From: Guillardia theta CCMP2712
Taxonomy: Eukaryota; Protista; Cryptophyta
DNA: 64,000 bases
Direction: 5' to 3'
Assembly: GCF_000315625.1 (NCBI RefSeq)
Contig: NW_005434647.1
Location: 522,544 to 586,543 of the forward strand
This document shows positions 48,248-52,880 of this stretch, piece after piece (positions within the stretch are counted from its first letter, which is position 1; each line of letters begins with the position of its first letter). The notes below the pieces were generated by a model. It searched no databases, was not told where the DNA came from, and saw nothing but the letters and a program-made list of their open reading frames with translations. A program made the translations under genes and the position numbers.

Positions 48248-51200
48248 CTAGTTGCCTCCGGCGAATCGCCCGCCAGCCTTCTGCCCGTTGATGGCGAGGA
48301 GGTCGACGTCGAAGACAAGCTAGAGTTGCGATCAGAGTGAGGAGGGAGTGGAGGGAGGGAAAGAGATGGTTGAGGGAGGGCGGGAGGCCCCGGAGGAAGG
48401 GCAGGAGATAGATAAGAGGGATGGGAGGAGGGGAAGAAGAGGAGGAGAAGGGAGGAGGAGAAGAGAGCATTACCTCAGCGTTGGGGGGGATGGGGCCCTG
48501 GCCAGTGGCGCCGTAACCGTACTCAGGGGAGATAACGAGCTGAGACTTCTCGCCGAGGGACATCTGAGGCCGGAGGTGAGGGGAGGGAGAGACAAAAGAC
48601 GAGCGGGGAGAGGGAGGAGGAGGAGGAGAACGAACAACAGGGGGAGGGGAGGGAGATCAAGGAAGGAAGGGTTGAGATGACAGGGAGAGGAGGAGGTTGA
48701 CCTGAAGGACTCCCTCATCCCACCCACGGATAACCTGAAAGAGCGAGCACAAGAGTCAGGCGTTCGGGAGGAAAAAGATGGAAGCAGAGGAGAGGAAGAA
48801 ATTAGAGAGGCGAAGAAAGCGAGGGAGGAGGAGCGGAGCACGGCAGGAGAATCTTTTCACCTGTCCGGTTCCCACTTGGAAGGTGAAGGGGGGACCGCGC
48901 TTGATGCTGGAATCGAACACCTGCTGGGGTTCAGCTAGGAATGGTGGGGCCTTCCTCCTTACCTGCTTGGTGGCCCTCAACTTGCCGACGTAGTGGACGG
49001 TGCAGACATCGCCGGGCTGGAGGAGGAGGTGAGAAAGAGAAGAGGAGGAGCAAGGAGGACAGAGGACGAACTGGTACGAGGATAGGAGGAGGTGCAGACT
49101 GAGGGGAGACACAGAGGGAGAGGGGAAATATTAGAGGAGCAGGGATGCAGGGAACATGTGGAGATGAAGGAGGGAGGAAGCAGCAAAGGAGGCGTGAACA
49201 ACACGAAGAGGATAGGAGGAGGAAGGGAGAACACCTGAGGGTAGTTGATACCGTCACCGCGGCGAATCTGAGTGACCTTGACGCCGCTGCCAGCGCAGTA
49301 AGGAAAGAGCAGAGCAGGAGAGAGGGAGGAGGAAGGGGGAGGTTGTCATGGTCAGAGAAAGCGCAAAGGAGGGAAGGAAGGCAGCGTTACGCACGAGACA
49401 GGAGCAGCAGCACGTGGCTGAGCGGCAGGTTTGGGGGGAGCCCTGGAGGGCACTGCGGACTTTCCGCCAGCAAGAGAATATCCCTACAGAGCATGCAAGA
49501 GTCAGGTACAAGCCGAAAATATGCTGTGCCAGTAGAGGATGAAGGAGGAGGGAGAACGAGAACACGACAGGTGGTAGAAGGAACGAGAAGAGGGAGGGGG
49601 GGGGGGGGAGCGAATGAGCAACGGGTAAGTAATGGAGGGGAGGAGAGAAGAGGAGAGGAAGCAATGATTGACCTTGATCTCGTCACGCTGGGACTTCATC
49701 ATGAGCTGACGAAGCTCCTTTTCGTCCACCTCAACCTGACAGGAGCTCTCACTTGAGGTTTGTGATAGGAGAAAGCCGATAACGAGGAAACTTGACAAGG
49801 ATCATGGAAAGCAACATCCCAGAAGGGCAAGGAGCAGGAAGTAAAGAGGAGGAGGAGCAGGACGAGGACGAGGACGAGCAGGAGGAGGAGAAGGAGGAGC
49901 AGGAGGAGGAGTTACTTCGTTGCTGGTGGCCTTGGCTGCTGGCTTGGCAGCAGGAGCGCTAGGAGCGCCAAACCCTCCAAATCCTCCAAAGAGGCCTGAA
50001 AATCAACTAAGGATCAGGACAGAGACAAGGAGGGTGGGGAGGAGGAAGTGCAGGAGGAGGAGGAGCGAAGAAAGGGCTGAGAGCGCGGAAGAGGCAGCGA
50101 AGTAGAGGCAGGAGACCTCCAAAGGGGTTGGCAGGCGCTGCTTTCTTGGCGGCCTGCTCGGCTTCGATCCTGTCACACTGTAAGCCAATAAGCGCGCATG
50201 GTCACTTCCAGTCCTCCACCTCGCTGCCTCTGCTGCTGCTGCCTCGGCGGCGGCGGCGGCGGCGGCGGCCTCAGCCTCGAGCCTTCTGGCCTCAGCCTGC
50301 ATGACAGTGAGGAAGAGAGATGGGTGGAGCCAAAGCGGGCGCAGAAGGAGGAAGAGAGGAGGAAAAGGAGGAAGGAGGGATAAAGATCAGAACCTCAAAA
50401 TCTTGCTGCTGAACATTCTTGGCGGGAGCTCCAAATCCACCGAAGAGACCAGCGAAGGGGCTACGCGCACTCCCGTCATGCATGCTCGTCATCACAACTC
50501 TCTCTCACTTGGCAGGAGCAGCAGGAGCCGCTCGTGGTGGAGCTGCAGCCTTGGGAGGGGAAGGAGGGGCAGGAGGGGCAGCGGCAGCCTTAGGAACAGC
50601 AGCCCTTGGCACAGCACGAGGGGCAGCCTGACCGGCGATTAGAACGCAAAATCCTTGCACTTTGTGATCTTGCCTTGGGTACAGGGGCAGGAGGAGGAGT
50701 AGGAGGAGGCGCTACGTCTTCAGCCTCGAAGACCTAGAGGGCATCCAGTCATAACAAGCTCCTCCTCCACGTTGGCTGTCACCTCCTGTTTTGGCGCCTG
50801 CTGCGCTCCTCCGAACCTGCAAGTTGTCGTCAGCCCAACGCGTCTACTGCTGCTGGTCCCACAGGTTGCCGAAGGCGGCGAAGGGGTTGGCGGGGGCGGC
50901 GGGGGCGGCAGGTTTGGCCTTGGGGGGCCTTAGGATAAAGTCAGACGAGATGAGAGGGTAGGAAAGGAGAGGAGAGGGGGAGGAGAGGAGAGGGGCAGGA
51001 GAGGGGCAGGAGAATGAAACGATGGAGAAGAGATGGAAATAGAGGCGGAGGAGACGATTCGGCTCACATCTTTCCAGCAGCGCGCAGAAGCTCCTCGTAC
51101 TCCTCCTGACTGATCTCCTCATACTGCTGCATCTTCAAGGAGCAAACAGGCTTGGGGCTGGCCTGGACAGCAGGAGGAGGGTCATCGAATATGCTCATCA

Positions 51201-51429
51201 GCATCAAATTCTGACCCTCGAGAACGACGGAAGTGCATTCTGACGAACAGCCAGAGAGTTTGTGGGGGCATTTACATACGCCGACGCCGCGGGGATGGCG
51301 CAAAGGACTGCGGACGAAAACAACTGCAGGGTGTTCAGCTCAAACCTACCACAGATCGTTTCTAGTGTGAAGAACAGAAAGGTGTTGGTAAGATAGGTGC
51401 AAGCTGACCAGCAGGGATTTCATCCTCAT
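48248..51429 (-). CDS. Plastid-targeted FKBP-type peptidyl-prolyl isomerase with long Ala/Pro-rich repeat arm, many exons
   Basis: MRMKSLL|LFSSAVLCAIPAASA-YVNAP...SFSR|ASPKPVCSLKM is a bipartite presequence. FKBP exons are GVKVTQIRRGDG, PGDVCTVHYVGKL, VFDSS..RG.PFTFQVG.GQ, VIRGWDEGV, MSLGEK..L.ISPEYGYG..G..PIPPNAE and LVFDVDLL. Confidence 0.9.
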
Positions 51430-52376
51430 TTCACACGAGGAGGAAAGGGAGTGTACAACGGATTCAAGGAAATTTGGGAAAGAGAGCAGGAGAACTGAGG
51501 AAAAGACACAACATGCTTTCGTCAATACAATTATTGTCCTTTTGGTGCATTGCGATCTCTTCCTCCTCCCTCCCCCCCTCCTCCTCTTCCTCTTCTTACC
51601 GCTACTTTCGCCATTAGAAAGGCGTCACGCTCAAAGCGGCCACCCCACCCCACCCTCATACTGAACAGACACCACCCTCTCTCTCGTTTTTCGATCTCCA
51701 CCTACAATTAGGACCAACTGCACACTGACTACCCTGAATTGCTTTACACCACCCCTTAATTCACTACATATTACCCCACCCTATGTTATCTCACCAGCTC
51801 CAGGTGTTGCCTGCACCCCTTGGTCTCCAGCCCCCACCTACCCTTTCTCACCCCCTACCCCAGCAATAAATTACAACTGCCTCCTTACGACTACCCCCTT
51901 TTGGAATTGAGGACCCTTGAAACTACCCCACCCTTCTGTAAACTTCACCCCCTGACCCACTACCCCCCTGTTTAGCCCTCAACAGCTCGCCTCCTTTATA
52001 TGACTCACCCCACCCCAAGGTCCACCCCAGTCTCCTCATGAGAGCTACGCCGCCGCCCTGGCCCGGGCCGCCGGTCGGCCGGGCCCTCTCACTGCAGCCC
52101 CGGGGCCGGCCTCTTGAGTGAGGCCGGTGGTCCGGGGGCCTGATCAGACCGTGCGGTCAAATTTTTGACTTTGGTCAAAACAGAGGTCAAATTTGACCCC
52201 AGTCAGTGTTCAAACTGCTTGTTTGTACGGGGGCACGTGCATTCAGTACTGTTTAAATTACTTTTAAGAATATAATATTTTGAAGAACGTGATCAACCCC
52301 CATTTAAGTGTCACCACCCCTGGATCCTAAAATCCTGAGGGGATGGTACTCCTTCAATATGTGAGACACCCCCTCA

Positions 52377-52880
<504 letters not shown>

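Follow-up and report, generated by a model that had tools for sequence, protein, structure and literature searches.

A predicted plastid-addressed FKBP12-type isomerase with a short-motif arm in the cryptophyte Guillardia theta

We analyzed 64,000 nucleotides (nt) of DNA from Guillardia theta CCMP2712 (NCBI RefSeq assembly GCF_000315625.1, contig NW_005434647.1, positions 522,544 to 586,543 of the forward strand), hereafter the window, in which positions are counted from the first letter. On its minus strand lies a gene predicted to encode an FKBP-type peptidyl-prolyl cis-trans isomerase (PPIase) preceded by a plastid leader and by a long arm that carries three copies of a Gly/Phe motif, which we call stickers. 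An earlier model-generated reading of the bare letters, here the original prediction, had assigned such a protein to positions 49380-51429. The gene extends to 48248, however, and the FKBP domain, at 49285..48290, falls outside that interval. After splicing of the minus strand at GT-AG borders, the bipartite presequence (ASA before a Tyr, then SLKM), the two acidic helices and the three motifs described in that reading are all present, and each repeat is indeed split by an intron. The features of the gene are as follows, from its overall structure to the individual elements in the order of the protein.

48248..51429, minus strand: whole gene; 19 exons, 18 GT-AG introns (42-218 nt), 420 codons plus stop
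51429-51409, 51323-51216, 51162-51068, 50928-50863, 50816-50783, 50733-50683, 50627-50509, 50460-50415, 50296-50220, 50169-50117, minus strand: exons 1 to 10
49995-49916, 49735-49673, 49483-49395, 49286-49235, 49016-48963, 48920-48861, 48734-48702, 48563-48474, 48319-48248, minus strand: exons 11 to 19
51279..51429, minus strand: predicted signal peptide, residues 1-22, spanning intron 1 and ending A-S-A before Tyr
51130..51278, minus strand: transit-peptide-like stretch, residues 23-54, spanning intron 2, with Tyr at +1
51070..51129, minus strand: acidic helix H1 (EEISQEEYEELLRAAG)
50804..50900, minus strand: sticker R1, AAPANPFAAFGNLFGGA, residues 85-101; intron 4 (46 nt) cuts its Leu codon
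50716..50788, minus strand: acidic motif VFEAED, spanning intron 5 and aligned to LFDDEDY..LPPVS of the orthologues
50517..50715, minus strand: Ala/Pro/Lys/Arg-rich spacer, residues 115-162 (48 residues), spanning intron 6
50418..50516, minus strand: sticker R2, PANPFAGLFGGFGAP, residues 163-179; intron 7 (48 nt) cuts the Asn codon of NPF
50142..50296, minus strand: poly-Ala/Glu helical spacer, residues 181-215, spanning intron 9
49958..50141, minus strand: sticker R3, AAPANPFGGLFGGFGGFGAP, residues 216-236; intron 10 (121 nt) cuts its Gly codon
49673..49918, minus strand: helix H2 (VDEKELRQLMMK..EIK), spanning intron 11; the MM inside it is the start of the NCBI model
49286..49483, minus strand: GYSL and a Pro/Ala spacer, residues 272-301, spanning intron 13
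48290..49285, minus strand: FKBP12-type PPIase domain, residues 302-407, exons 14-19
48251..48289, minus strand: C-terminal tail NGQKAGGRFAGGN, sticker-like (GGRFAGGN), kept in four of five orthologues and not in P0156

In our model, which is predicted from sequence with exon borders fixed by coordinates and then checked by script, this is one gene with 19 exons and a 420-residue product, not one of 159 residues as annotated. By the script check, leaving any one of 17 of the 18 introns unspliced would break the reading frame, through a stop codon or a shift; intron 15 (42 nt) is the one exception, and the NCBI model splices it out too. Pyrimidine content on the coding strand is 72.5% in the introns versus 53.5% in the exons. 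Five orthologues carry the same ordered elements in uninterrupted open reading frames (ORFs): P0156 (411 residues, from an IMG transcript contig), P0251 (449 residues, from MMETSP), P0252, P0255 (which includes the EukProt Teleaulax amphioxeia protein P0254), and P0260 (459 residues); in alignment, the model is collinear with these ORFs. In-frame alternative donors are present at exon 6 (GC, 9 nt downstream) and exon 8 (GT, 21 nt downstream), and their use would affect only spacer residues.

The NCBI protein XP_005834170.1 (159 residues, named FKBP-type peptidyl-prolyl cis-trans isomerase) matches residues 262-420 of the model exactly, over exons 12-19, and thereby confirms seven junctions. 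Together with the effects of intron retention, the collinearity with the uninterrupted ORFs and the synonymous divergence of the AAPANPF copies described below, this match gives the splice model strong, though indirect, support and sets the pattern apart from chance. This annotated protein (48248-49711, minus strand) is truncated at its N terminus and misses 261 residues, the plastid leader included. Its start is a Met in exon 12, in the middle of the conserved helix H2, and the arm is therefore unannotated. The introns, between 48320 and 51408, are packed with CCT/CTC tracts, which give rise to long purine-rich pseudo-ORFs on the plus strand. A one-stranded swarm of ACCCC of promoter type is found just upstream of exon 1, with 18 ACCCC versus 0 GGGGT in 51530-52400.

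For homology searches, exons were used as queries and database orthologues as proxies for the joined protein; the joined 420-residue model itself was used for translation, for MAFFT alignment and for BLAST against fetched sequences. Genome-wide searches covered the assembly of 87.1 Mb in 669 contigs.

By these comparisons the C-terminal domain is an FKBP12-type PPIase, complete as the original prediction had held, and predicted to be catalytic. Pfam FKBP_C (PF00254, cut-off 21.1 bits) matched exons 15-16 with 28.4 bits and exon 18 with 27.7 bits, and matched the orthologues with 104-110 bits. Residues 262-420, taken as a separate sequence (P0155), matched FKBP12 and plant FKBP structures with E values of 1e-33 to 1e-46, with its residues 40-146 aligned. 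Alignment to the wheat FK1 domain shows the HY, FDSS, VIRGW, YGYG, IPPNA, and LVFDV blocks, which we take, together with their residue-by-residue numbering, to be the lining of the FK506/proline pocket. A protein search with exon 18 returned mostly generic FKBPs, yet it also returned the first orthologues (P0049 and P0021).

The leader pattern marks the predicted product as plastid-addressed. Residues 6-20 form the hydrophobic core of the signal peptide, which ends in an AxA site (ASA at -3 to -1), and the 32-residue stretch behind it is abundant in hydroxylated and basic residues, has no acidic residue and ends in SLKM. An ASAFAP motif with an aromatic residue at +1 is a recognised plastid signal in cryptophytes (PMC4329603). 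The G. theta sequence has both a small-x-small signal peptide site and an aromatic +1 residue. In the orthologues, the leaders are 16-22 residues long with F at +1 (P0156, P0251, P0252, P0255, and P0260), and their sites read AMA/FAP, ADA/FAP, and AYG/FAA, with ASA/Y as the G. theta counterpart; the transit-like parts end in K/R followed by M just ahead of H1 in all of them. After the G. theta leader we found no twin-arginine plus hydrophobic lumen signal, which makes the stroma the likeliest destination for the protein.

The arm that follows is 30% Ala and 16% Pro, contains no Trp and has an isoelectric point (pI) of 9.07 in G. theta. Its helices are YEEISQEEYEELLR and VEVDEKELRQLMMK. All three stickers open with AAPANPF followed by ..(L)FGG, and they begin 76 and 55 residues apart, an uneven spacing. 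Pairwise, the AAPANPF copies differ in three or four of their seven codons, and every difference is synonymous, with zero replacements, as expected of an ancient duplication whose peptide has been maintained by selection. H1 is nearly invariant: the orthologues share 12 to 16 of its 17 residues with G. theta, and a search of the 87-Mb genome with the arm profile matched the H1 exon alone (E value of 0.0015). An AlphaFold2 (AF2) model of P0156, built on an eight-row alignment, places helices only at H1, at the poly-Ala segment, where the predicted local distance difference test (pLDDT) score is 73-84, and at H2, and leaves the rest as coil. We infer that the arm is largely disordered. In P0255, H1 and H2 appear as an internal duplication (residues 52-82 versus 278-312, 9 of 17 identical, E value of 6e-5), and in G. 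theta H2 is more diverged than H1.

Across the six sequences H1, H2, an acidic (L/V)(F/Y)-E/D-rich motif and stickers with the core [LMF]FGG.FGG are kept, and the proteins appear to form a family of FKBP12-type isomerases in cryptophytes, with a conserved short-motif arm. The five orthologous ORFs with their bipartite leaders bear out the proposal of a single gene for a plastid-addressed FKBP behind a largely disordered multivalent arm. The conservation in relatives on which the original prediction was staked is found for the sticker core but not for NPF, which occurs in two lineages only: G. theta and P0156 have the NPF prefix, and the Teleaulax-type orthologues lack it. G. theta and P0156 also have three stickers, compared to two in the Teleaulax-type orthologues, and they are the only two with a poly-Ala helix. 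The charge of the arm is not conserved, with a pI of 4.05-5.33 in the five orthologues versus 9.07 in G. theta.

Four of the orthologues (P0251, P0252, P0255, and P0260) have a WW domain, with Pfam scores of 34-43 bits, and P0156 has none. In G. theta, no Pfam WW match was obtained on the scanned exons (those of at least 20 residues), and the arm has no Trp. The site of the WW domain varies: it lies ahead of H1, right after the transit peptide, in P0252 and P0260 and past the first sticker in P0251 and P0255. These two positions suggest shuffling of the module within the disordered region.

On two metagenomic scaffolds, one of them from Tara Oceans (L015:1774-3153 and L014:2541-3920), P0260 is encoded by one ORF without introns, compared to 18 introns in G. 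theta, and arm and enzyme are therefore one gene in the genome of a relative. On both scaffolds it adjoins two ORFs with ammonium-transporter Pfam matches and a ribosomal 60S acidic protein gene.

A search with H1 retrieved members of this FKBP family only, and the sole match in an arm word search with P0156 was P0251. Scanning metagenomes with the arm profile gave nothing confirmed, and scanning them with the full-length profile turned up 80 loci of ordinary FKBPs, matched over the domain only. There was no usable match for the arm in the ESM Atlas, and a literature search found no paper on this cryptophyte FKBP family. Two Pfam identities were considered and rejected: TSP9 (PF11493), for which P0251 scored 20.5 bits against a cut-off of 25 and the best score in the genome was 17 bits at an unrelated poly-Gly locus, and DUF2076, whose subthreshold matches we judged to be compositional.

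We then asked where else in the G. theta assembly such motifs occur. APANPF is found in this gene only, with two DNA matches (the intact copies in R1 and R3) versus two in the control. LFGGFG gave eight matches versus six in the control and FGGxFGG four versus one. For NPF..FGG there were four matches versus six in the control. The other matches were mostly unrelated, an isolated exon (L101) among them. A typical FG nucleoporin (L100; G000:C148, ~139.6 kb) and a ricin-lectin-like gene (L108; G000:C1, ~904.6 kb, minus strand) have GLFGG-type motifs, and a signal-peptide protein (L107; G000:C32, ~134.1-135.2 kb, plus strand) has a G/F motif followed by an ER-retention-like KDDL at its end (ER, endoplasmic reticulum). 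One further gene, on contig C59, deserves a description of its own.

G000:C59, ~424,190-431,461 (L105:2690-9962; upstream part in L109), minus strand: long gene, here called the C59 gene

The C59 gene starts with a hydrophobic leader ending in IHA/F and a transit-like stretch, in frame with the first of four repeats of ~75 residues (GDLV..RSDGS.RF to LPWQNA.EV). The downstream part has three helical repeats of ~157 residues rich in Glu, Arg, Lys, Ala, and Gln, with spacers of the PPPKAAV type. The stickers number at least nine; among them are GGLFGRIGSGG (twice), FAGLFGGK, GGFFGGLFGGS, GFFASLFGGK, GGLFGIGAG, and two copies of NPF(G/A)G(L/F)LSFLEP. A Pfam scan of the gene gave no matches. With the ~75-residue repeat, Foldseek listed Tudor/SH3-like barrels as its best rows, none of them significant (E values of at least 0.23), and the ESM Atlas returned only matches below 0.9. 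An ACCCC swarm is also found upstream of this gene (L109:501-1500). We consider the C59 protein a candidate plastid scaffold, and its motifs hint at a sticker code shared with the FKBP arm.

We propose, with a probability of roughly 55%, that the gene in the window encodes a plastid-imported FKBP12-type isomerase on a multivalent, low-affinity tether arm. The 22-residue signal peptide would bring the protein to the ER-continuous outer plastid membrane, and the aromatic +1 residue together with the transit-like stretch would take it on to the stroma, with cleavage probably after KM. The mature protein, of ~37 kDa, would then consist of a catalytic FKBP domain on a mostly disordered arm of ~250 residues. 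Acting as a multivalent low-affinity tether, the arm would concentrate the isomerase beside its partner or partners, where the FKBP domain could act locally on Pro-rich clients. That a WW domain is inserted in some orthologues suggests an arm that serves as a platform for protein-protein contacts with Pro-rich partners, a role that would suit a prolyl isomerase. Taken by itself, a recruiting function of some kind for the arm seems to us slightly favored over none. The most plausible partners would be other sticker-bearing plastid proteins, for instance the C59 protein, with the FKBP as a client and not the scaffold of a sticker-based assembly; this assignment of partners we regard as doubtful. 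It is more doubtful still, and in our view improbable, that the G/F motifs form a cohesive plastid sticker code by which a giant C59 scaffold, with putative small beta-barrel repeats and long charged helices, would build an FG-like phase or meshwork, perhaps a pyrenoid matrix or other stromal body, with the FKBP recruited through the same stickers as its resident isomerase.

Several observations weigh against the tether proposal and its extension to the C59 protein. Among database proteins of 247-786 residues, no full-length G. theta protein was found with the H1 query, and the G. theta residue at +1 is Y, where F is usual. The AF2 model of P0156 is of low confidence, with a mean pLDDT of 47, and so is that of the C59 repeat, which has four weakly predicted strands and a pLDDT of 46. 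GLFGG is present in ER-type, lectin-like and nucleoporin genes, and the motif alone is therefore not plastid specific. A tblastn comparison of the FKBP arm with the C59 gene scored 21 bits, and shuffled arms scored up to 22 bits; the link between the two is thus one of motif grammar and not of demonstrable homology.

Among other explanations for the arm, the Gly/Phe motifs could be membrane-interface anchors at the thylakoid or envelope, similar to fusion peptides or to the tail of TSP9. The motifs are hydrophobic and Gly rich and lie between basic or Pro-rich spacers, and the subthreshold Pfam match of P0251 (20.5 bits) is to TSP9, which sits at the thylakoid periphery and binds cytochrome b6f (PMC9839326). 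That match, however, is seen in only one of four orthologues and not at the G. theta locus, no TSP9 match in the PDB was obtained at E values up to 10, and the motifs are predicted as coil rather than amphipathic helix in the low-confidence AF2 model of P0156. We give membrane anchoring only a small chance.

The original prediction proposed a pyrenoid- or thylakoid-targeting arm, and the arm could be a Rubisco-binding module that forms or targets a pyrenoid, with the stickers docking on form ID Rubisco. The disordered sticker-and-spacer layout and the plastid targeting would fit such a module, the motif is conserved among cryptophytes, and reviews up to 2026, which describe EPYC1, PYCO1, CsLinker, and a candidate from a chlorarachniophyte, name no linker for cryptophytes, in agreement with what the original prediction had stated. 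The stickers are, however, few (two or three) and irregular in spacing, the Teleaulax-type orthologues lack NPF, APANPF is confined to this one G. theta gene, the arm does not resemble the motifs of EPYC1 or PYCO1, and a catalytic domain is attached. Known pyrenoid linkers are strongly basic, and the arm has a pI of 9.1 in G. theta but 4.0-5.3 in the orthologues. The G. theta arm thus differs from a pyrenoid linker in the number and regularity of its motifs, in having no conserved basic charge and in not being enzyme free. Genes rbcS and rbcL were not found in the G. theta nuclear assembly. Taken together, a linker role for the arm is unlikely.

We hold it to be equally unlikely that the arm is an inert low-complexity spacer or an extended leader whose motifs persist by composition bias and slippage. 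The extreme Ala/Pro/Gly content would agree with this, as would the variation of copy number and spacers between species and the fact that composition-corrected BLAST shows no arm homology upstream of H2. An inert segment is nevertheless hard to reconcile with an order of H1, stickers, acidic motif, and H2 that is kept in six sequences, with AAPANPF copies that differ only synonymously and with the near invariance of H1.

Finally, the NCBI/JGI model, which begins at a Met in exon 12, would make arm and FKBP exons separate transcripts and a 159-residue cytosolic FKBP the true product, but we give this almost no credence given that such a start sits in the middle of a conserved helix, that exons 11 and 12 are no further apart than one GT-AG intron of 180 nt, that the promoter-type ACCCC swarm lies upstream of exon 1 with none inside the gene, and that arm and FKBP are in one ORF in all orthologues.

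The public gene model would accordingly change from 159 to 420 residues and from an apparently cytosolic to a plastid-addressed product. Motifs that are split by introns hide functional low-complexity regions from ORF-based annotation. If a shared plastid sticker code is true, it would offer an experimental route to the organization of stromal bodies in the complex plastids of the red lineage. Even if the arm tethers the enzyme to a single partner, it would be a tractable natural case of an enzyme recruited by a disordered multivalent arm. The enzyme itself is a member of the known FKBP family, as judged from its sequence, and what is new is the sticker-arm architecture, which other cryptophytes share.

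Compared to known systems, TSP9 (PF11493) is like the arm in having an acidic aromatic motif and, ~50 residues further on, GG-F-GG-LF with basic residues, but the subthreshold match of P0251 is absent from three other orthologues and from G. theta, and there is no pairwise PDB match. The likeness to GLFG-type FG nucleoporins, a G-L-F-G-G core in a disordered context, is formal only. FG nucleoporins have tens of repeats, separated by Ser/Thr/Gln/Asn spacers, and lack a leader for the ER or the plastid, whereas the FKBP family has two or three motifs and Ala/Pro spacers and the G. theta protein has a signal peptide. EPYC1, PYCO1, and CsLinker are likewise plastid proteins with a disordered sticker-and-spacer grammar, but they are enzyme free, their repeats are more evenly spaced and they have no motif in common with the arm.

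The Teleaulax-type orthologues resemble Pin1 in that they join a WW domain and a prolyl isomerase in one chain, but their isomerase is an FKBP and not a parvulin, the position of the WW domain is variable, and G. theta and P0156 are without it. Chloroplast FKBPs from plants and green algae (the lumenal FKBP13/16/20-2 types) are nucleus encoded, have twin-arginine lumen signals and are not known to carry a sticker arm. The G. theta protein would be, as they are, a nucleus-encoded FKBP-type isomerase of the plastid, but it is without the RR-type lumen signal and its domain is of the cytosolic FKBP12 type. To our knowledge, and as far as our literature search went, the architecture matches no described FKBP class. 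The closest counterparts of the catalytic domain, which they match over its full length, are FKBP12 (FKBP1A) and the FK1 domain of plant FKBP62/73; while FKBP12 is a bare cytosolic domain, the predicted G. theta protein adds to it a bipartite leader, a motif arm of ~250 residues, and a GGRFxGGN tail.

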